Assembly (NCBI RefSeq): GCF_002113885.1
Contig: NW_018408769.1
Location: 422,832 to 486,831 of the forward strand
From: Mizuhopecten yessoensis
Lineage: Eukaryota
Direction of reading: 5' to 3'
Length of the DNA stretch: 64,000 nucleotides
Below are positions 2,160-16,321 of the stretch, piece by piece. The translations under genes and the position numbers were made by a program. How positions within the stretch are numbered: the stretch's first letter is position 1; each line of letters starts with the position of its first letter. A model generated the notes under the pieces. The model did no database searches and was not told the origin of the DNA. It was given only the letters and a program-made list of their open reading frames with translations.

Positions 2160-3203
2160 TATCCTTTACTGTATCCTTTACCTACTGTATCCCTTATACT
2201 TACTGTATCCCTTACCTACTGTATCCCTTACTTATACAGTATCCATTACTTACTGTATCCCTTACCTACTGTATCCCTTACCTACTGTATCCCTTACTTA
2301 CTGTATCCCTTACCTACAGTATCCCTTACCCACTGTATCCCTTACTTACTGTATCCCTTACCTACTGTATCCCTTACTTACTGTATCCCTTACCTACTGT
2401 ATCCCTTACTTATACAGTATCCCTTACCTACTGTATCCCTTACCTACAGTATCCCTTACCCACTGTATCCCTTACTTACTGTATCCCTTACCTACTGTAT
2501 CCCTTACTTACTGTATCCCTTACCTACTGTATCCCTTACCTACTGTATCCCTTACTTACTGTATCCCTTACTTACTGTATCCCTTACCTACTGTATCCCT
2601 TACTTATACAGTATCCCTTACCTACTGTATCCCTTACCTACAGTATCCCTTACCCACTGTATCCCTTACTTACTGTATCCCTTACCTACTGTATCCCTTA
2701 CGTACTGTATCCCTTACCTACTGTATCCCTTACTTACTGTATCCCTTATGGCAGACATCACAGTGTTAGGGGAGAAATCACAGCCCGCAGCCTGATGTAC
2801 ACAACCAATAAGAATCACACTATACCTTGTTTACGTAATACCAATCAAAGCAATGTAAATCATGTGCCAGTAAAACACTTACCTACTGTTTCCCTTACCT
2901 ACTGTATCCCTTTCCTACTGTATCCCTTATCTACTGTATCCCTTACCTTCTGTATCCCTTACCTACTGTATCCCTTACTTACTGTATCCCTTACTTACTA
3001 TATCCCTTACTTACTGTATCCCTTACCTACTGTATCCCTTACCTACTGTATCCCTTACCTACTGTATCCCTTACTTACTGTATCCCTTACCTACTGTATC
3101 CCTCACCTACTGTATCCCTTACTTACTGTATCCCTTACTTACTGTATCCCTTGTCTACTGTATCCCTTACCTACTGTATCCCTTACTTACTGTATCCCTT
3201 ACC
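2160..3203. repeat. 18-bp minisatellite (tactgtatcccttacc/t) in two blocks separated by a unique ~127-bp spacer
   Basis: Tandem copies at ~2160-2747 and ~2878-3203. ORFs 2152-2769 and 2156-3343 are periodic (TVSLTYCIPYLLYP). Confidence 0.96.
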
Positions 3204-4951: not shown

Positions 4952-7348
4952 TCAAACATTTGCAGTCAAAGTATTATCCTCGTTCACCAAGCTTCTCTTT
5001 TCCATGGCGATATTGTCTGTGTCGCTGGAGCTAGTTGAAGTATAGTTGCCGCTGTCAGAGCCACGACTGGTCGATGAGATGATACTTTTTTGGGATGACA
5101 CCTTTGGTACGGTACGTCTGACATGTGTATCCGTGTAAGCTCCAACCATTCCAGGACATGAATTAACACATGGTCTACTTGACAGAGGCGCTTGACCGTC
5201 GATGTCGTCCGGCACTACCTCAATGTCGTCAGACCAGTCACAAGGATTGTTGGTCTTCACGACCGTAGCATCAGGATCAACACCTGGGAAATAAAACGCA
5301 TTCTTAAAGTTTTCATGTTAAATATTGAGTATTAAAACTCCTTATATTACATATGTATCACGTATAATGTGAATGTATATATTACACACATAACCTAAAT
5401 TGGAAGATGTTCTTCAGCAAATATTCATCACTTCTGGTGACATAACAGTGCACAAACTTCGATACCAAAATCGAGCTAATTAATCGACCAATATGGTATA
5501 TTTTAGGAGCACGCTAAATATTATTGCATGCCGAACTTTGAAATATTGGTACTATTCTGTTATTTCCCTACCCTTTGGAGTGGTCAAGCTGTCCCCGTCC
5601 AGTAGGTGAAAGTCTCCCATGTCCGAAACGTGATGCTCATCCACAGGATGTTGCTGCCGAAGATCAACCTTTGGTCGTGAATCCGCTGGGGATTCTGGTA
5701 TAGTTTCCGGCAGAATCCTGTGGTTTCCCCGTGAAGAGTCGTTCCCACCTTGTCCAGACGGTGACGGCTGGTATACACTGACTGACGAACCTTAAGATTA
5801 AAATATATTTCTATCAAAATCAAATAAAAAATAATAATTTAGTTCACAATGATAAATAAAATTGTCCCTTATATTTACATGATGCAATTTTAACTAACAA
5901 AACATTTCATTATCAATTTCGCAAGGTTCGTCAGAATGTTTTCTGACGTACATCATTGTCATATGACTGTTATGGTAAAAAAAGGTTCCTCAAAATCATA
6001 ATGGTTGAGCATCACCTTTATCTATCTCTCAGTAATCTCTATGAATCATATTAAATGTAGGTGCATAGGAAGCAGTCCAACCGCAGTAATAAGTCGTATT
6101 TAATAATTTACCAATAGGCCCCGACATAACAAGCTGTTGCGGTGGAGCTGTGGGGTTCACATGGTCAGAATTGACGTCTGTATCATCATCACGACCAGGT
6201 AGCTGCTGATATCTCTGTGATATACTGCCTTCGTCAGTGTTTTTGTCACGTGAGCGATTCCTACAGGCGATCACGTGTTTGACTATACAGAACAGTATGC
6301 AAGGGGACAACAGGGCCACGAGAATCCACACCACGTATGTCAGAGTGGTCACTTGGCCTGAAATAAGACATTTACCAAATTATCAACAACGATCCAAGGT
6401 CTTTTATTACTTAGTGCTATATGGTACTCAGTCTAGAAGCAAATATAATTGTCAATTTTACGAAACGATACATTCAAACAATGTACATTTACCTATCAAT
6501 GTGCTCAACAATTCCTCAGAAGGACCTTCAGTCTTCGGAATTTCTTCTTCCCCTTTCAACTCTACAATAATGGAAAAATGATGTTGTAACACGAATGAAA
6601 AGTGAACAAAATCCTTATTCAGTACACCATTTAATGCATATTCAGTTTGTTGAATCGTCAACCATCACCATTCCAGTGTATCCTTTGGACTATTTTATTT
6701 CAATGCAGACCGTAAACCTTGCTGACGAAAATGATATTATTTACAAAGAAAATGAATTAAACGAATTTCTATTAAAAATTCCCATGTTACAAGGTACCAA
6801 GAGAGGTAACTCCGTTATCTTTTAATGAAACATATTAATATAGACGGAAAAACACAAGACTATTTTTAGAAGAGAACAACATAATACTTAGTTGCCGCTA
6901 AGGTTTATCTTTGTCGTTGTTGTACACTGTAAAATAAATTGTCCATATGTGCAGACACTATGATATATTTTGTCCTTACGCGCTGACAATGCGCGCTATA
7001 TGTTGTATTTTTGTATATATACGTGATAACTATTATTTTGTCCCTGCGTGTTGACGCTGATAATGTATTCCTGTGTGTCGTCACTGTACTATATATCTTT
7101 ATTTCTATATAAGGTTACTCACCTTTGCATCGTTGTCCACATTGTGAGGATACGTTGAGCTCGTTACAAACATCTAAGGTACACACGTCACAGCGTTGTT
7201 TACCAATATTACAAAAATCACGAGGAAAGACGCAGATGTCGTGTCCACAATTAAATTTAAAACCTTCAGGTGGGGACGTAGTTTCCGCCAATAGTAATCC
7301 TTGTAGAAGTAAACCAAAACACACAAGGCATCTGGTGACGGGATCCAT
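4952..7348 (-). CDS. Grindelwald-like TNF-receptor-family type I membrane protein, paralog A (5 coding exons, ~363 aa)
   Basis: Exons 7348-7123, 6561-6493, 6357-6112, 5790-5572 and 5283-4952. All introns are GT-AG and phase 1; total 1092 nt, open. Signal peptide MDPVTRCLVCFGLLLQGLLLA. 8-Cys domain CGHDICVFPRDFCNIGKQRCDVCTLDVCNELNVSSQCGQRC. TM segment YVVWILVALLSPCILFCIV followed by basic residues. Disordered tail with no death domain. Family call rests on cysteine spacing recalled for Drosophila Grindelwald. Confidence 0.8.
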
Positions 7349-7435
7349 ATCGAGAAACACAACTGACACCGTTTGTATAAAATGACTAATGTTCCAATTC
7401 ACCTGTTCAAACGAACTTATTTTTATACCATTGTC

Positions 7436-7522
7436 TATTTATAAATGGGAATTTCCGTTTTCCATACCTAGTGGAAATACCCATTTACAGGAAATTTTCA
7501 ATATATCACGCTATATCACGTG
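7436..7522 (-). promoter_or_regulatory. Promoter of receptor A: TATA box, three kappaB-like sites and an E-box
   Basis: TATAAATA on the minus strand at 7436-7443, ~90 bp upstream of the ATG. GGGAATTTCC at 7447-7456 (exact NF-kB consensus), GGAAATACCC at 7473-7482, GGAAATTTTC at 7490-7499, CACGTG at 7517-7522. Confidence 0.7.
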
Positions 7523-9216
7523 ATCATAACGGTAGTTGTGGTTGTTAATATAAATGTTATTCTATTAGTACTAGACTCCATATTTACCTTAATTTACGGC
7601 AGTGATACAAGCGTCTCACTCTAAAGGAACTGTACATCAATTATATACATTTACGAAATCAAATGACATCTTACATAAGCAAAATTCTTCTTTAATGATA
7701 TCTTTGTGGTCAGGAAAAAAGGAAAAGTTATCATTGTTTCAGTATATAGCTGGAAGTATACGATCATTAAGTCCACACTTACCAGGTGACTAACTTATAG
7801 AGTGCTGATGATAACGGTCCTTCATTCAGAATATAATGTACCCATTATAAGTAAATACTATCATATCTTGTTTTGAACAAATATATTAGATCATTTCTGC
7901 ATCATTTGTTTCCAAACGTATCGTTTACGAACATGTGTTTTATATATCAAAGAATGCAATAAAGTGTCTTGTTGAAATAAAATTTAAAAATTACTTGTAG
8001 ATTTATAAAATGTGCGATTACGTTTTGTTCGGTAAATAAACATATTTCTTCATACTAGCGTACTGTTAGTGTGTTGTTATAGTGACGGAAACAGTAGCTC
8101 GTTTTCCTATTTATATTTTATTTATGGGGTCGCCAAACTAAACCTCTTATCTTCATTTTCCCATCAGATATACTGACTTATGACCTATCATCGTAATTTG
8201 CAGAACATTTATCAGCAACGTGCATTCATCCAGATTTAAGGTAGAATAATTAAATATTTCGGTAATTTATGTCATCAGAACGTTTGTAAAGAGTCTTTGA
8301 ATCCCCCTAAATATAGGTCCTCAGATGAGGCAATCTTACTTGTCTGACAATATTAATCCATACACACGTATAGATTATAAATGCAGTTATCCTGTGTTTA
8401 TCGAATACTTATTTGGCTACAATGTTGTCTTTTTGTCTGCCATTTACAAAGCTAAAATTTCACGCAATCATTCTTTCAAGCTGGATTTTGTTTTTTAAGA
8501 ATTACTTGTGTAGCTTTAGAATATGTTTATTACGTTTAAAACCATGCATGAATAATGCTTTAAGTTCATCTTGTTTTCTTGTTTTTACATTAATGATCTT
8601 ATAGTCAGTATTAAATAGGGTACATGAACGCCAGTTTTTAATTTTCTCACGTTGTTCTTGTTTTATAGAATAATGACGCATATGTATACTACAATGCATC
8701 ACCTCTGTATGTGCGTTTTTTTTCAAGTACTAATATTTTTATAGAACGCTGAATATATACTATCTGCACCAGGTGATTGTATCAATACATTTAGTTTTTA
8801 TATCACCATATTTTATTTGTCAATTTTTTTTTTCAAACCAATAAAGTAATAATTTAACCACTGCTGCATACCATTTTACTCCTGACCTTATTTTAGCTGC
8901 TGTTATCTTTTGTTAATAATAGCATTATGGTTTTTTTCAATATATCCAGACTCACCGTTATTTTGAAACTGTTAAGTTTGGATCACTTTTTTCATGGTTT
9001 TTATTTACATTTAATGTTGCACTTAAGTTTGAATGTTATTTCCGTTATATTTCACATTTTTTTGATAGAGCTTAATTTGTATTTACGTGTTTATCATGCA
9101 AGGACAAATTCTTGTGACCACTTTTTACAATTTATTGCTATCTATTACATGTATATTTTCTTCGATTTCCAATAACTGTAGGGTGTTGAATTAAAAAAAG
9201 AGGAACCATAGTCACA

Positions 9217-9222
9217 TTTATT
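9217..9222 (-). terminator. Candidate polyadenylation signal (AATAAA) for receptor B
   Basis: tttatt on the plus strand ~1.4 kb past the stop codon, followed on the minus strand by a T/GT-rich tract. Other AATAAA sites exist. Confidence 0.35.
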
Positions 9223-10648
9223 CATAAAATTAATACAGAGCGTATGCAACCACCGCCTATGGATCTGTTCTTTATCAATATTTTGAGATTAACATGCACG
9301 CATACTTAAATGAAACAAATTGCGGGGGACTTTGATAGAGTCATTATTCAGTGTATAACGCCATACTGCAGCCTTAACATTACATTGTTGTAATAGCATT
9401 CGCCTTAAAATGACCAGAAGTCTTGAAAATCGTTAGCAATAATCAACACTATTCGTGTTTTTTTTAAAATTTTTGTACGTCTAAATACAAATGAAACGAC
9501 AAGCAGTCTTCACAATATTGAACTATGTGTTTGTATGGTTTAGTCAAATATGAACTATGGATCCAAATACACATGTTTATTTTCCCATCTTTGATCTATT
9601 TATTCATCAGTCTTTATCTGGGATGAACTCTTACGCCATCTTTTCGTGCTAAGAAACTCCAGTGTTCACTTTCAGTGTTACAGTAATTGCACTAAGATCG
9701 TAAATGGCACAACTGTATTTGAAGATTTATGGGCTAAAGTTAACTTTGGTTACCATCTAAAGATGTATTTTTATTATAATTTGATTTCGCTCCTTTCAGG
9801 TAGGGATGTGATTTAACATAAACATTAACGTAAGAATTTACTACATGTGTGTATGTTACATATGAAAAATAGGAACTGATTCTGGTAGCTGTTGTTATTA
9901 AAGATGTTTTTGTTATAACTTTTTATGTTTCGAAGCTCTCTCGAAACTTTAACAACTGGTGATAGTCAGGATCAGTGTGTAAGCTATATGGTTGATGCAT
10001 GTGCCTCTACTTCAGTATACCGTGTAACGTATTTAATCTAAAAGTATATCGCCACAACCGGTAAAACTTGGACATTTGATAAAATGTGTAAATGTAGTAG
10101 AAAACACGAAATCGTGTTGTGAATTCTTAAATTTATTTCAAAATAAAACTTCAAAAGCAAACAGAGAAAATGCAAACCTGAAAATAAATAACGTCTACGG
10201 AAAACCAAACGTTTTACACTGCAATACAGTTAACACGTTTTACCATCATATATATTTACATGCATATGAATCAGGAATAATGATTCTTAATTTACAGCAG
10301 AAAGTCCTTATACCCTTCTGCATGCTTATAATAATTTCCAGAATGGTAGGCGGTTGGAATAGTTTGAAATCATTCTGAGTAATACATAACAATATCATGA
10401 CCTAAAACAATTTTCAATAACACCCTGATGGCTTCCAGTGTATCGATTGTGAGGAATAAATTAAAGTGTTTTTAAAACTAAATAAATACGAATTGTATAT
10501 GTAACTCTCCCGACAAGAAGTGGGTTTATTTTTATCCTCGTTCTAGAGTTTCACATCACCATCGTTGACATTAGCTTAATTCACGTCTTTATAATGATAC
10601 TGGCCATATTTACTACAATAATCAATCTATAAAGTATAACAACTCGGC

Positions 10649-13600
10649 TCATGATTCTACTTCCTGTTGTCTATTAACTGCTGGTTGCTGCATGATATTG
10701 TTCTTCAGATCAACGCTTCCGTTAGGGCTAGAGTTGCCGGTTCCGTAGTGACCACTGTCTGGAGTTGAGATTCCACTTGTGGTGCCACTTCTTTCAGAAG
10801 ACAGACTGATAGACGACTCGGCTGGAGGGGCTGTAGGTGTGACGTTATTTAATACCGTGGTTGATCGCGGTCTATGTTGTACTTGAGTCTCGATATCTCT
10901 CGGAAGGGATACTTGATCCTCCTTCTCAAAGACATTCTTTGTCATCGTTTCTTCGTCATTGGTAGAATGACGTCTGCTACTGGGGACGTTAGCATTCACT
11001 TTAAAAGGAAACAGAAAATACAGACGTATGATATATGTTTGCAGAATATAAAGAAAGTTAAAGCATTAAAAGGCAATAGCTTGTCCTAAAACTTACAGTT
11101 GTATTGCAGATAAAAATCAAGTTAATAATTCTAATTTATTAAAAGGTTGCCATTGCTTTTTGGCACAAAACGGATACTAAAGATGACTGCTTACATATCA
11201 GTTTCATATTATGCTTGTCAAGGAGGGTGCAGTCTGCAAGATTGGTCGACATGTGTTCGTCTATAGGATGGCTGATGACTGGTACTACCGCCTGGTTTGA
11301 GGGCCAATTGGTTGATTCCTCCATGTGTCTACCCAGACCATTACTACCGTCGTCCATAAGTTTGGATGAAAATTGACACTCTGTATTACCGGATCGCTCT
11401 GATGGTTGGCATTGTTCTCCTTCTGTAATGACACAGTGATAGTAACGTAGATAATTGTAAAATGCATAAAGAACGAGTTACACATCTGATATTGGGATCT
11501 AACTGTCACACATCTTATACTGTTTCTATATTATGTGCTCATTGCATGGTGTCAGAAAATAAAGCGTTATGTCGTTGTTTATATTTTTTTTGTTTTGTTT
11601 TTCGAAATTATATTTTTTTTTATATAGAATTAAACTTGATTCACAATATGCATATCCGTTCAATTATTGTAAGCATTTAAAATGGCCTCACCTGCTAGTG
11701 CTGGTTGCTTGTTTCCACGTGGAGGCAACAATGGGACTTTTTCTGCCAGACAGTTATCAACGACATGTGTTTCTCCCATCGTCTTCTGAACAACACTTGC
11801 TCCTGCAGGCTCTACAGTTATTCCGTTAGAAACGTCAGTCTCCTCGTCATCAAAACGTGTCATTTGCTGCGGTCCTGCTTTCAGTTGTCTCATTGTCCCC
11901 TGTCTGTCTTTGATACTTTGTTTTCGGTTATCTCTGCGTATCTTTATTAGTAGGACAATGATGAATATTAGCATGGCCATCATTATAGACACTAGGATGT
12001 AGATGATTGTCCATTGTCTTTTATTTTCCTCTGAAATGTAGTAAATACATTAATGACAACGGAGCTCTGAATAATATATAAAAAAAATAGATACGATTTG
12101 GAAGCGGTTCAAATTACAAGGTGATATGTAACATGTTCTAAATCAACTTCTCTCGCCGTTTTGTGATACATACCTAGTGACAATATAAGTCTGTCTTTCT
12201 CTTCTTCTTGGACAGCAAGCAGTCCCTCTGGAAGTTTTCAACAAATTTAATATAATTGTTTCAATTTTCATTCAATATATGATCGTGAGTCAGTTTCATT
12301 CAACATGATGTATCACAACGCGGTACTTTATATTATTGTTATAACCTACCTTTCGCTGCCTGGTTAGCACCGATACCATCAGATCCTCCATTCTCAAGTG
12401 CTGTAACGACAAAGGTGAAGGCCAAACTTTTATTGTACTCACGCAAGTGTCAAAATGTACAATGTATAACATATGATAAGATATCATTGTGTAGCTATTA
12501 CAAAATAATATATCGTCTTGGACTAACACAGGGTCACACGTCATAATGAGACCTTTACAATATACTGTACCGTACCTAACAACTGGGTTACACAAAGTAA
12601 CATACCATTTAGAGAACCTTACAATATACAAAATGTACCGTATTAGACCACTGGGCAGCATAGGGCAACATGTCTATCGGATCATTACAGTTTACCATTT
12701 GGATCTCCGGGAAAACATGGAGTAGTTTTTCATTGTGTCTATATCACATTAATGTGTACCATATCTGACAACTGGGCAACACAGGGTAACAAGTTATTGT
12801 CTGATTATTACTGCATACTGTATAATACATACTGAACTACTGGACACAAGACAATAAAATACGTCATTTACTTAACATTAGCATATACCGTATTGGAACA
12901 CCTGGCAACATAGGGCAACAAGTCAATGTGTGATTACAATATACCGTATTTGAACACCTGGCAACATATTGGAACACGTCAATGTGTGATTACAATATAC
13001 CGTATTGGAACATCTGGCAACATATGGCATCACGTAAATGTGTGATTACAATATACCGTATTTGTACACCTGACAACATAGGACAACACCTCAATGTGTT
13101 ATTACAATATACTGTACTTGAACACCAAGCAACGTAGGGTAACACGTCAATGTGTGATTACAATATACCATACTGGAACACCTGGCAACATGTCAATGTG
13201 TGATAACAATATACCATACTGGAACACCTGGCAACGTAGGGCAACACGTCAATGTGTGATTACAATATACCATACTGGAAAAAATGGCAACATGTAAATG
13301 TGTGATTACAATATACCATACTGGAACACCTGACAACAAAGGGCAACACGTCAATATATGATTACAGTATACCGTATTGGAACACCTGGCAACATAGGGC
13401 AACACGTCAATGTGTGATTACAATATACCGTAATGGAACACCTGGCAACATAGGGAAACACGTCAATGTGTGATTACAATATACCGTATTGGAACACCTG
13501 GCAACAAAGGGCAACACGTCAATATATGTTTACAGTATACCGTATTGGAACACCTGGCAACAAAGGGCAACACGTCAATGTGTGATTACAATATACCGTA

Positions 13601-16321
13601 TTGGAACATCTGGCAACATAGGGCAACACGTCAATTTGTTATTACAATATACTGTACTTGAACACCTGCCAACGTTGGGCAACACGTCAATGTGTGATTA
13701 CAATATACCATACTGGAAAACCTGGCAACATGTCAATGTGTGATACATGTAACAATATACCATAATGGCACACCTGGCAACGTAGGGCAACACGTCAATG
13801 TGTGATTACAATATACCATACTGGAACACCTGGCAACACGTCAATGTGTGATTATAATATACCGTATTGGTGGAACACCTGGCAACATAGGGCAACACGT
13901 CAATGTGTGATTACAAAATACCATTCTGGAACACCTGGCAACATGTCAATATGTGATTACAATATACCGTGTTGGAACACCTGGCAACATAGGGAAACGC
14001 GTCAATTTGTGATCACAATATACCGTGTTGGAACACCTGTCAACATAGGGCAACACGTCAATGTGTGATTACAAAATACCATACTGGAACACCTGGCAAC
14101 ATGTCAATGTGTGATTACAATATATCGTGTTGGAACACCTAGCAACATAGGGCAACACGTCAATGTGTGATTACAATATACCATATTGGAACATCTGGCA
14201 ACAAATGGCATCACGTAAATGTGTGATTACAATATACCGTATTGGTACACCTGGCAACATGTCAATATGTGATTACAATATACCGTGTTGGAACACCTGG
14301 CAACATAGGGCAACACGTCAATGTGCGATTACTATATACCGTGTTGGAACACCTGGCAACATAGGGCAACACGTCAATGTGTGATTACAAAATACCATAC
14401 TGGAACACCTGGCAACATAGGGCAACACATCAATGTGTGATTACAATATACCGTATTGGAACACCTGACAACAAAGAGCAACACGTCAATGTGTGATTAC
14501 AATATACCGTATTGGAACACCTGACAACAAAGAGCAACACGTCAATGTGTGATTACAATATACCATACTGGAACACCTGGCAACAGTCAATGTGTGATTA
14601 CAATATACCGTATTGGAACACCTGGCAACAAAGAGCAACACGTCAATGTGTGATTACAATATACCGTATTGGAACATCTGGCAACATATGGCATCACGTA
14701 AATGTGTGATTACAATATACCGTATTGGTACACCTGGCAACATGTCAATATGTGATTACAATATACCGTGTTGGAACACCTGGCAACATAGGGAAACGTG
14801 TCAATTTGTGATCACAATATACCGTGTTGGAACACCTGGCAACATAGGGCAACACGTCAATGTGTGATTACAAAATACCATACTGGAACACCTGGCAACA
14901 TAGGGAAACGCGTCAATGTGTGATTACAATATACCATACTGGAACACCTGGCAACAGTCAATGTGTGATTACAATATACCGTATTGGAACACCTGGCAAC
15001 ATAGGGCAACACATCAATGTGTGATTACAATATACCGTATTGGAACACCTGGCAACAAAGGGCAGCACATCAATGTGTGATTACAATATACCGTATTGGA
15101 ACACTTGGCAACAAAGGGCAGCACATCAATGTGTGATTAATATATTATCTGACACATGGGTCACGTAGGGTAAAATGTCACTTTATACATATTACAATGT
15201 ATATAATTGTAACATGTGGTTGCAGGACAGTTTGTGTAATGCATTATAGCGTATAAAACAGTATGTATAACAAATATAAAAGCGCCCTGTTACAATCATT
15301 GCGACAGGTCTAAAAATAAAGATTCATTCGTGCCGCATTGCAGTTTCGCTAAAATTAGCGACGTAAATTTTCAGAATATAAAGTTGGATCTGACTCAATA
15401 TACTCATGTAATACTATCTCCATTACACCATATATACGTGGTCAGATTGCATCATACATTAAACGTGACCCGATCGATACCAAATAACGCCACTATATTG
15501 TACACGTGTGATCACATTTACATTCCTTACAGAATATCGTGTAAGTCCTGACCAGGACAACATACAACAAATATATATGTAGAATAATACAAATTTTAAT
15601 AATTTAGAAAGCTCACAGGCTTAACAACACATAATTAAAAAAGAAAACATCTGTTTTAACTGTAGTAAAACGGTTTCTACTTTTCATTATACATATTTTC
15701 ACTACATGTAGTAATGCGTGTATCTGACAGGTGTATTGCTTTATATCTCGTGTATAAACAATGTATTGATAATAAGTTATTGTAAAAGTAGACATATGAA
15801 TATATAGAGTAAAGAGATAACAATGATGTTACAACATAACTTTTGAATAGATACATGATACACTCTTGTGTGATATATATTGTCCTGAAAAGAACTTTTC
15901 CTTAAAATGAGAGATTAGATAGACATTATTTGAAATACACGCGTTTATGAATATTTAAACAGTTGTGATTTGTTTTCTTATGAATTGAATGTTTGAACAG
16001 ATCAAAATTAAAAATAATAAATTCCTTACCATTAAAAAACTAGTTTCTTTTCGGATGAAGACATTTGTTAGGTAATGTAAACTTACCTTTACACTGACTG
16101 TAGCACTGGGACGGAGTGTCTAACGAGTAACACTCGTCTTGAGTACAGGCCTGACACGAGGGACGCTGACCCTTTATCACCCGACAGTATTCAGCTGGAA
16201 ACTCGCAAAAGTCAAGTCCACAGTTGAACCAAAAACCATCAGGGGGTAATTCCAAAGCGGAAGAAGACAGGAAATTATAACAGCAGAGAAGAGCGACGGG
16301 AATGACCACGAATCTAGCCAT
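10649..16321 (-). CDS. Grindelwald-like TNF-receptor-family type I membrane protein, paralog B (6 coding exons, ~418 aa)
   Basis: Exons 16321-16087, 12400-12350, 12227-12174, 12030-11692, 11422-11195 and 10998-10649. All introns are GT-AG and phase 1; total 1257 nt, open. Signal peptide MARFVVIPVALLCCYNFLSSSA. 8-Cys domain CGLDFCEFPAEYCRVIKGQRPSCQACTQDECYSLDTPSQCYSQC, homologous to paralog A (PPxGFxFNCGxDxCxFP). TM segment WTIIYILVSIMMAMLIFIIVLLI followed by KIRR. Confidence 0.8.
12880..15140. repeat. Minisatellite of ~53-bp (and ~42-bp) units in intron 1 of receptor B
   Basis: Unit caatataccgtattggaacacctggcaacatagggcaacacgtcaatgtgtgatta, with degenerate copies extending to ~12500. ORFs at 13094-14867 are repeat translations. 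Confidence 0.96.

Follow-up and report, generated by a model that had tools for sequence, protein, structure and literature searches.

Two Receptor Genes and a Shared Tail Block

The window analysed here, a stretch of 64,000 nucleotides from the scallop Mizuhopecten yessoensis, carries two neighbouring genes of TNF receptor type, both on the minus strand: gene A (RefSeq LOC110463250; protein P0036, 363 residues) and gene B (LOC110463262; P0001, 418 residues), each of which is named 'TNFR-Cys domain-containing' in UniProt. Their otherwise diverged cytoplasmic tails share a short block of the form HP[VI]DEH-x6-DxxLLD, the subject of this text:

5597 to 5650, minus strand: block A, HPVDEH-x6-DFHLLD, residues 228-245 of P0036
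11217 to 11270, minus strand: block B, HPIDEH-x6-DCTLLD, residues 278-295 of P0001

Translation of the minus strand gives HPVDEHHVSDMGDFHLLD at 5597-5650 in gene A and HPIDEHMSTNLADCTLLD at 11217-11270 in gene B. Both copies comprise 18 residues in the same spacing, nine of them identical, and lie at the 3' end of the penultimate coding exon, with the phase-1 donor following eight codons on in gene A and seven in gene B. A preliminary description, made from the DNA letters and a list of open reading frames, had already noticed the shared block in both penultimate exons; the translation confirms the observation and the identical spacing, as well as the coordinates given for block B, while the start given for block A (5598) was off by one base. 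That description was also correct in finding the A copy invisible among the listed open reading frames, where its frame is missing because no start codon follows the upstream stop. The window contains no runs of N, and a synonymous variant at 11265 falls within a Pro codon of block B.

When the translated block exons of A and B were compared by pairwise BLAST, the block was the sole significant match (E 1e-5). The last exons did not align (BLAST, E 11) and the transmembrane exons aligned only weakly. The earlier remark that the flanks do not align is thus borne out by BLAST, with the qualification that PTAPP and DSG[NH]Y motifs are also common to the two tails. Nine ungapped identities in 18 were reached in only one of 3000 shuffles of exon A, and no further occurrence of the pattern HPxDEH was found in the six frames of the window. 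A chance origin of the likeness between the two blocks is unlikely. Five of the nine shared residues are encoded by different codons, indicating that the likeness is held at the protein level, and recent gene conversion between A and B was rejected because the synonymous sites differ.

The block region of the AlphaFold2 model has a predicted local distance difference test (pLDDT) score of 35-41 and no secondary structure, and predicted disorder of this kind agrees with the nature of short linear motifs. The block is a real and selectively maintained short linear motif in disordered receptor tails: it exists in both genes, is transcribed, is held at the protein level and is kept in gene B across scallops.

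Gene Organization and Transcripts

The gene models were examined exon by exon, and the full-length proteins are database records found by searches. Gene A has five coding exons and gene B six. All introns checked in the two genes are of phase 1, so that the exons constitute in-frame cassettes:

7123 to 7348, minus strand: coding part of gene A exon 1, for the signal peptide and the one cysteine-rich domain
6492 to 6563 (ends approximate), minus strand: gene A stalk exon, left out of one RNA contig
6112 to 6357, minus strand: gene A transmembrane exon, containing PTAPP
5572 to 5790, minus strand: gene A penultimate exon (4 of 5), phase 1 on either side, carrying block A
4952 to 5283, minus strand: gene A last coding exon with the stop codon, containing DSGNYT at about 5036-5056
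16088 to 16321, minus strand: coding part of gene B exon 1, for the signal peptide and the cysteine-rich domain
About 12351-12401 and about 12175-12228, minus strand: two small stalk exons of gene B
11693 to 12031 (ends approximate), minus strand: gene B transmembrane exon, containing EKVPLL at about 11726-11743
11195 to 11425, minus strand: gene B penultimate exon (5 of 6), carrying block B together with the tail island of highest conservation (11343-11396)
10649 to 10998, minus strand: gene B last coding exon with the stop codon, containing PTAPP and DSGHYGT

Contigs derived from RNA (four runs from four studies) cross the joints 5788/6110, 6356/6492, 6561/7123 and 10998/11198, and at exon 4 of gene A the loose end of a contig at 5570 runs on into exon 5. 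These spliced contigs demonstrate that both block exons are present in transcripts, and the RefSeq proteins P0036 and P0001 include the blocks. A micro-exon at the gene B joint was considered and rejected, the three intervening letters being accounted for by a T-to-C polymorphism beside the splice site. Exon content varies in some records: the stalk exon of gene A is skipped in one M. yessoensis RNA contig (joint 6356/7122), an Argopecten isoform, X2, is without the block exon (isoform and transcript records P0006 and P0039), and one transcript-derived protein is without the transmembrane exon and could be a soluble form.

Identity of the Host Receptors

Between A and B the cysteine-rich domains (CRDs) show 52% identity. 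Scanning every exon of both genes against Pfam gave no useful match; a profile of three paralogous CRDs aligned with the ectodomain of Drosophila Grindelwald (6zsy) over the full cysteine register, at an E value of 3.4. In the AlphaFold2 model a signal helix is followed by the CRD (pLDDT about 90), a transmembrane helix and a disordered tail, and the tail exons are without any Pfam domain; the proteins accordingly have type I topology with a tail that is devoid of a death domain. Foldseek searches with the CRD model ranked Grindelwald, BCMA and TACI as best matches, all with E above 0.8; in VIA-align, BCMA scored Z 4.8 with all 41 of its residues aligned, and Grindelwald Z 3.7 with 27% identity. 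The fold scores are low on account of the small size of the domain, and membership of the Grindelwald/BCMA type is likely rather than proven. A and B are therefore likely to be single-CRD, death-domain-less TNF receptors of that type, as judged from the models.

Homologues of grnd in M. yessoensis have already been listed in a preprint (10.1101/2024.07.27.603686). The fly and scallop receptors are built alike, from a signal peptide, one CRD, a transmembrane segment and a death-domain-less, disordered tail, and Grindelwald provides the closest cysteine register and fold found for the scallop CRDs, although the sequence similarity of the CRD alone is not significant (the E of 3.4 above). The tail of Grindelwald contains Traf2- and Veli-binding regions; the comparison made here covers the CRD and the architecture.

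Conservation and Genomic Copies

The block is kept in the gene B orthologues of Pecten maximus, Ylistrum balloti and Argopecten irradians, where it follows the pattern P-I-[DE]-[DE], three variable residues, then [ST]-[NH]-x-A-D-C-x-L-[LI]-[DE]. The Pro and Ile of the first half, together with A-D-C and a Leu, are invariant in the B proteins of all four genera, Mizuhopecten included, at an overall identity among the B orthologues of about 50%. Among 18-residue windows of the B tail the block ranks third in conservation, with a pair identity of 0.56 vs a tail mean of 0.39; the windows ranked above it are RSGN...KLMDDGS and GHY...VDLKN. The former, the island at 11343-11396 on the minus strand (RSGN..QFS.KLMDDGS), lies in the same exon as the block, has a pair identity of 0.86 and is without an assignment to a known motif. 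In all six scallop copies the two halves of the block stand at constant spacing. The A and B orthologues share one chromosome-scale contig in both Pecten and Argopecten, indicating that the tandem pair is older than the split of the four scallop genera.

Beyond scallops, the tails of Mytilus, Tegillarca and two transcript-only mussel-like proteins contain two to three relaxed units each, in which P-x-acidic-acidic is followed after 5 to 12 residues by D/N-x-x-[ILV]-[LI]. This relaxed expression matched 11 of 16 tails vs 0.18 expected, but the pattern was composed after the data were seen. Unionid homologues have the first half followed by PPPY, and the full block is absent from them. A family-wide alignment, used to query a word-indexed protein search for homologues, yielded A-type and unionid proteins alone, so that sampling outside scallops is thin. 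A PDB sequence search with the block region of Argopecten found no match.

Within the M. yessoensis genome (987.6 Mb in 82,659 contigs) the block exon was found at three loci only, A, B and a copy of A designated A' (G000:C82619, L008), which lies on a 3.6-kb contig and is 93% identical to A in DNA, introns included; A' must be a duplicate of very recent origin or else a divergent haplotype. The block in A' reads HPVEEH...DFHLLD (P0037), with PVEE in place of PVDE, and this single conservative change compares with changes at 8 of 57 positions elsewhere in the exon. Type C, the third kind of paralogue (G000:C2059:455700-460000, L005), lies on another contig; it possesses the CRD, and its short tail lacks the block. 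Type C proteins carry a long repeat-bearing N-terminal extension ahead of the CRD and have orthologues in other scallops (P0007-P0009).

A Putative Adaptor-Docking Module

Of the roles considered for the block, we favour that of a composite adaptor-docking module with a putative TRAF-type first half, to which a probability of roughly 0.4 is assigned. The first half, [HQ]-P-[IV]-[DE]-[DE], would most likely be TRAF-interacting, like PIEET of Fn14 or PVQET of CD40, such that ligand-driven trimerisation of the receptor would allow the block to recruit a TRAF, of which the scallop has many. The second half, D-x-x-L-[LI]-[DE], at a fixed distance of six residues, may provide a second contact with the same partner or, alternatively, act as an acidic dileucine signal for post-endocytic sorting; judged by the motifs, a composite of TRAF docking and sorting is plausible. 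After the duplication that gave rise to A and B, the module would have been constrained in B and lost from A in some lineages.

The consensus for TRAF1/2/3/5 consists of a major form, Px(Q/E)E, and minor forms, Px(Q/E)xxD and Px(Q/E)xT, that of TRAF6 being PxExxZ (PMC6125299); the TRAF motif of Fn14 is PIEET (PMC13079164). PVDE in block A and PIDE in block B are each one conservative step from Px(Q/E)E, at position P0, and the caution of the preliminary description that PxDE is only a near match to the TRAF consensus was well placed for both. Pro at P-2 is present in A, A' and the four B orthologues. At P1, Glu is found in A, A', B and Argopecten B, and Asp in Pecten B and Ylistrum B. The exact consensus occurs in A' (PVEE) and Argopecten B (PIEE). 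The likeness to the motifs of Fn14 and CD40 extends over Pro at P-2, a hydrophobic residue at P-1, acidic residues at P0 and P1 and a polar residue at P2, and in both settings the motif lies in the disordered tail of a death-domain-less receptor of TNFR type, with PIEE and PVEE themselves occurring in close scallop relatives; the scallop copies in the window differ in having Asp at P0, and orthologues also have PIDD and PIED. A regular-expression scan of both M. yessoensis tails revealed no other strict TRAF2 or TRAF6 consensus, so the block is, by elimination, the only candidate in a class of receptor that normally signals via TRAFs. PxExxZ, which requires Glu at P0 and, at P3, a residue that is acidic or aromatic, had no match in the A or B tails in the same type of scan. 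At least 12 loci with TRAF MATH domains are present in the genome. On one contig (G000:C5558:30000-111000), five loci with TRAF-type MATH domains are clustered in about 80 kb, suggesting a local expansion of TRAF genes.

For the second half, the Asp at -3 and the Leu-Leu of the DxxLL signal recognized by GGA VHS domains are present as DFHLL in A and DCTLL in B, and the DxxLL form is also found in Pecten B and Ylistrum B. Signals of this class, as in mannose-6-phosphate receptors, sortilin, BACE1, LRP9/12 and TrkA, resemble the scallop motif in having D at -3, LL and then an acidic residue; the SD pair upstream in block A and the existence of a GGA-type gene in the scallop genome are further points of likeness. 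They differ in that the scallop motif is internal, with over 115 residues separating it from the C terminus, that B is without an upstream acidic cluster, and that relatives have LI, IL or VL. Functional internal DXXLL motifs have been documented (PMC4666136). The GGA-type gene is represented by VHS exons and, about 10 kb away on the same strand of the same contig, a GAE exon; a search of the genome for the GAT domain gave no match, and the gene call consequently rests on the VHS and GAE exons. The block does not conform to [DE]XXXL[LI], the residue at -4 from the first Leu being Gly in A and Ala in B. In the fly, Eiger-driven internalisation of Grindelwald is required for signalling (PMC8024323), and a sorting element in the scallop receptors would therefore make biological sense.

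A number of observations weigh against the composite module. Position P0 is occupied by Asp instead of Gln or Glu in A, B and Pecten B (Glu is found in A', Ylistrum B and Argopecten B), and Asp and Glu interchange freely at both P0 and P1 among the orthologues, which suggests a general need for acidity instead of a fit to the TRAF pocket. The dileucine is LI in Argopecten B and IL or VL in the mussel-like homologues; DxxLL is internal, 118 (A) and 123 (B) residues from the C terminus; and upstream of it B has NLA, without an acidic residue. B also has, elsewhere in its tail, a canonical [DE]xxxL[LI] signal, EKVPLL (E-x-x-P-L-L-P; about 11726-11743, minus strand, in the transmembrane exon), which is kept in the four genera and absent from A, and which could account for endocytosis unaided. 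In the A orthologues, moreover, the block has decayed, to YHVEVH...GEFPPLQ in Pecten maximus and HPRSEQ...GWAPSLK in Argopecten irradians. A hidden Markov model (HMM) of the six scallop blocks gave weak, partial matches to distant tails, confined to the first half and equalled in 4-41 of 300 shuffles, and no match in the Tegillarca tail; given this weak result outside scallops, family-wide conservation is not claimed. Alignment of bivalve orthologues has thus yielded a divided outcome, with the block kept in B of four scallop genera, lost from A of Pecten and Argopecten, and weak further afield. The proposal that it defines this receptor family is not supported and was overstated, in view of its decay in two A orthologues, its absence from type C and from unionids and its weakness outside scallops; the earlier interpretation as a whole is supported in part. 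Conservation is firm in scallop B, is limited within A to Mizuhopecten, and beyond scallops is suggestive only.

Several candidate motifs were rejected, each being contradicted at a defining position by copy A, copy B or both: a TRAF6 site, an adaptor protein (AP)-type [DE]xxxL[LI] signal, an LC3-interacting region, a clathrin box and a caspase site.

Competing Explanations

The block might instead serve trafficking only, the whole of it being an acidic-cluster dileucine signal for Golgi-endosome sorting, recycling or down-regulation with no TRAF role. The DxxLL form in A, B, Pecten B and Ylistrum B speaks for this, as do the GGA-type gene, the precedent for internal DXXLL signals (PMC4666136) and the further motifs of trafficking type in the tails (PTAPP, the DSG[NH]Y degron look-alikes and ExxxLL in B). 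We nevertheless consider it rather unlikely: in addition to the distance from the C terminus, the absence of upstream acidic residues in B and the LI, IL and VL variants, it leaves the invariant Pro and Ile of the first half and the fixed spacing unexplained, and the receptors would then have no candidate TRAF site. The block could also be a bipartite ligand of one other partner, for example a scaffold akin to those of the Veli/Lin-7 or Traf2 regions of fly Grindelwald, of which a single surface would read both halves; in favour of this are the constant distance between the halves in all six scallop copies, the recurrence of relaxed two-part units two to three times per tail in mussel-like and ark-clam homologues, and the fact that neither known consensus is strictly satisfied. 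However, the analysis found no candidate partner, and the repeats outside scallops depend on a post hoc pattern with a weak HMM test, and this explanation is judged unlikely.

A relic of common ancestry with little present function, in which the two M. yessoensis copies have simply not yet diverged, would agree with the decay of the block in the Pecten and Argopecten A orthologues, where the gene itself is retained, and with its ranking only third among the conserved islands of the B tail. Set against this are its retention in B of four scallop genera despite about 50% overall identity, the scrambling of synonymous sites with residues kept, and the single conservative change in the block between A and A' as opposed to 8 of 57 in the remaining exon; such a relic is very unlikely. 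A broader extension of the composite module can also be envisaged. The Fn14 tail has a hydrophobic pair about ten residues beyond PIEET, and the scallop block might represent the lophotrochozoan form of an ancestral bilaterian TRAF-docking element common to the Traf2-binding region of fly Grindelwald and the Fn14 tail. This is a long shot; if true, Grindelwald-type receptors would be linked to Fn14 through the tail in addition to the CRD, and an extended, bipartite form of the TRAF-interacting motif would be defined.

Significance

The genes and their family have been annotated or reported before, and the block is a fresh example of known motif classes and not a new kind of element; no earlier description of it was found in the accessible literature. 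Except in Drosophila, the links from single-CRD TNF receptors of invertebrates to TRAFs and endocytosis have been poorly mapped, and in bivalves the TNF, TNFR and TRAF families are greatly expanded. A short, conserved and mutable block offers a handle on which scallop TRAF or sorting adaptor these receptors use, while its constraint in B and decay in the A lineage constitute a natural experiment in the division of function after tandem duplication.

Other Features of the Tails and the Window

PTAPP is present in both tails in different exons, at 6140-6160 in gene A and about 10830-10845 in gene B; elsewhere it is found in the gene A orthologues of Pecten and Argopecten, the Pecten B protein and one of the mussel-like homologues. 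DSG[NH]Y, followed within two to three residues by S or T, likewise occurs on the minus strand in both tails (about 5036-5056 in A and about 10739-10759 in B), and of the scallop A and B orthologues only Argopecten A does not keep it; we take it to resemble the beta-TrCP phosphodegron of the IFNAR1 DSGNYS type. Large tandem arrays lie in the window, at 4-1935, 2167-3203 and 12883-15139; their repeat units measure 30/60, 16 and 56/158 bp, and the last of the arrays fills much of the large intron of gene B (12401 to 16088).

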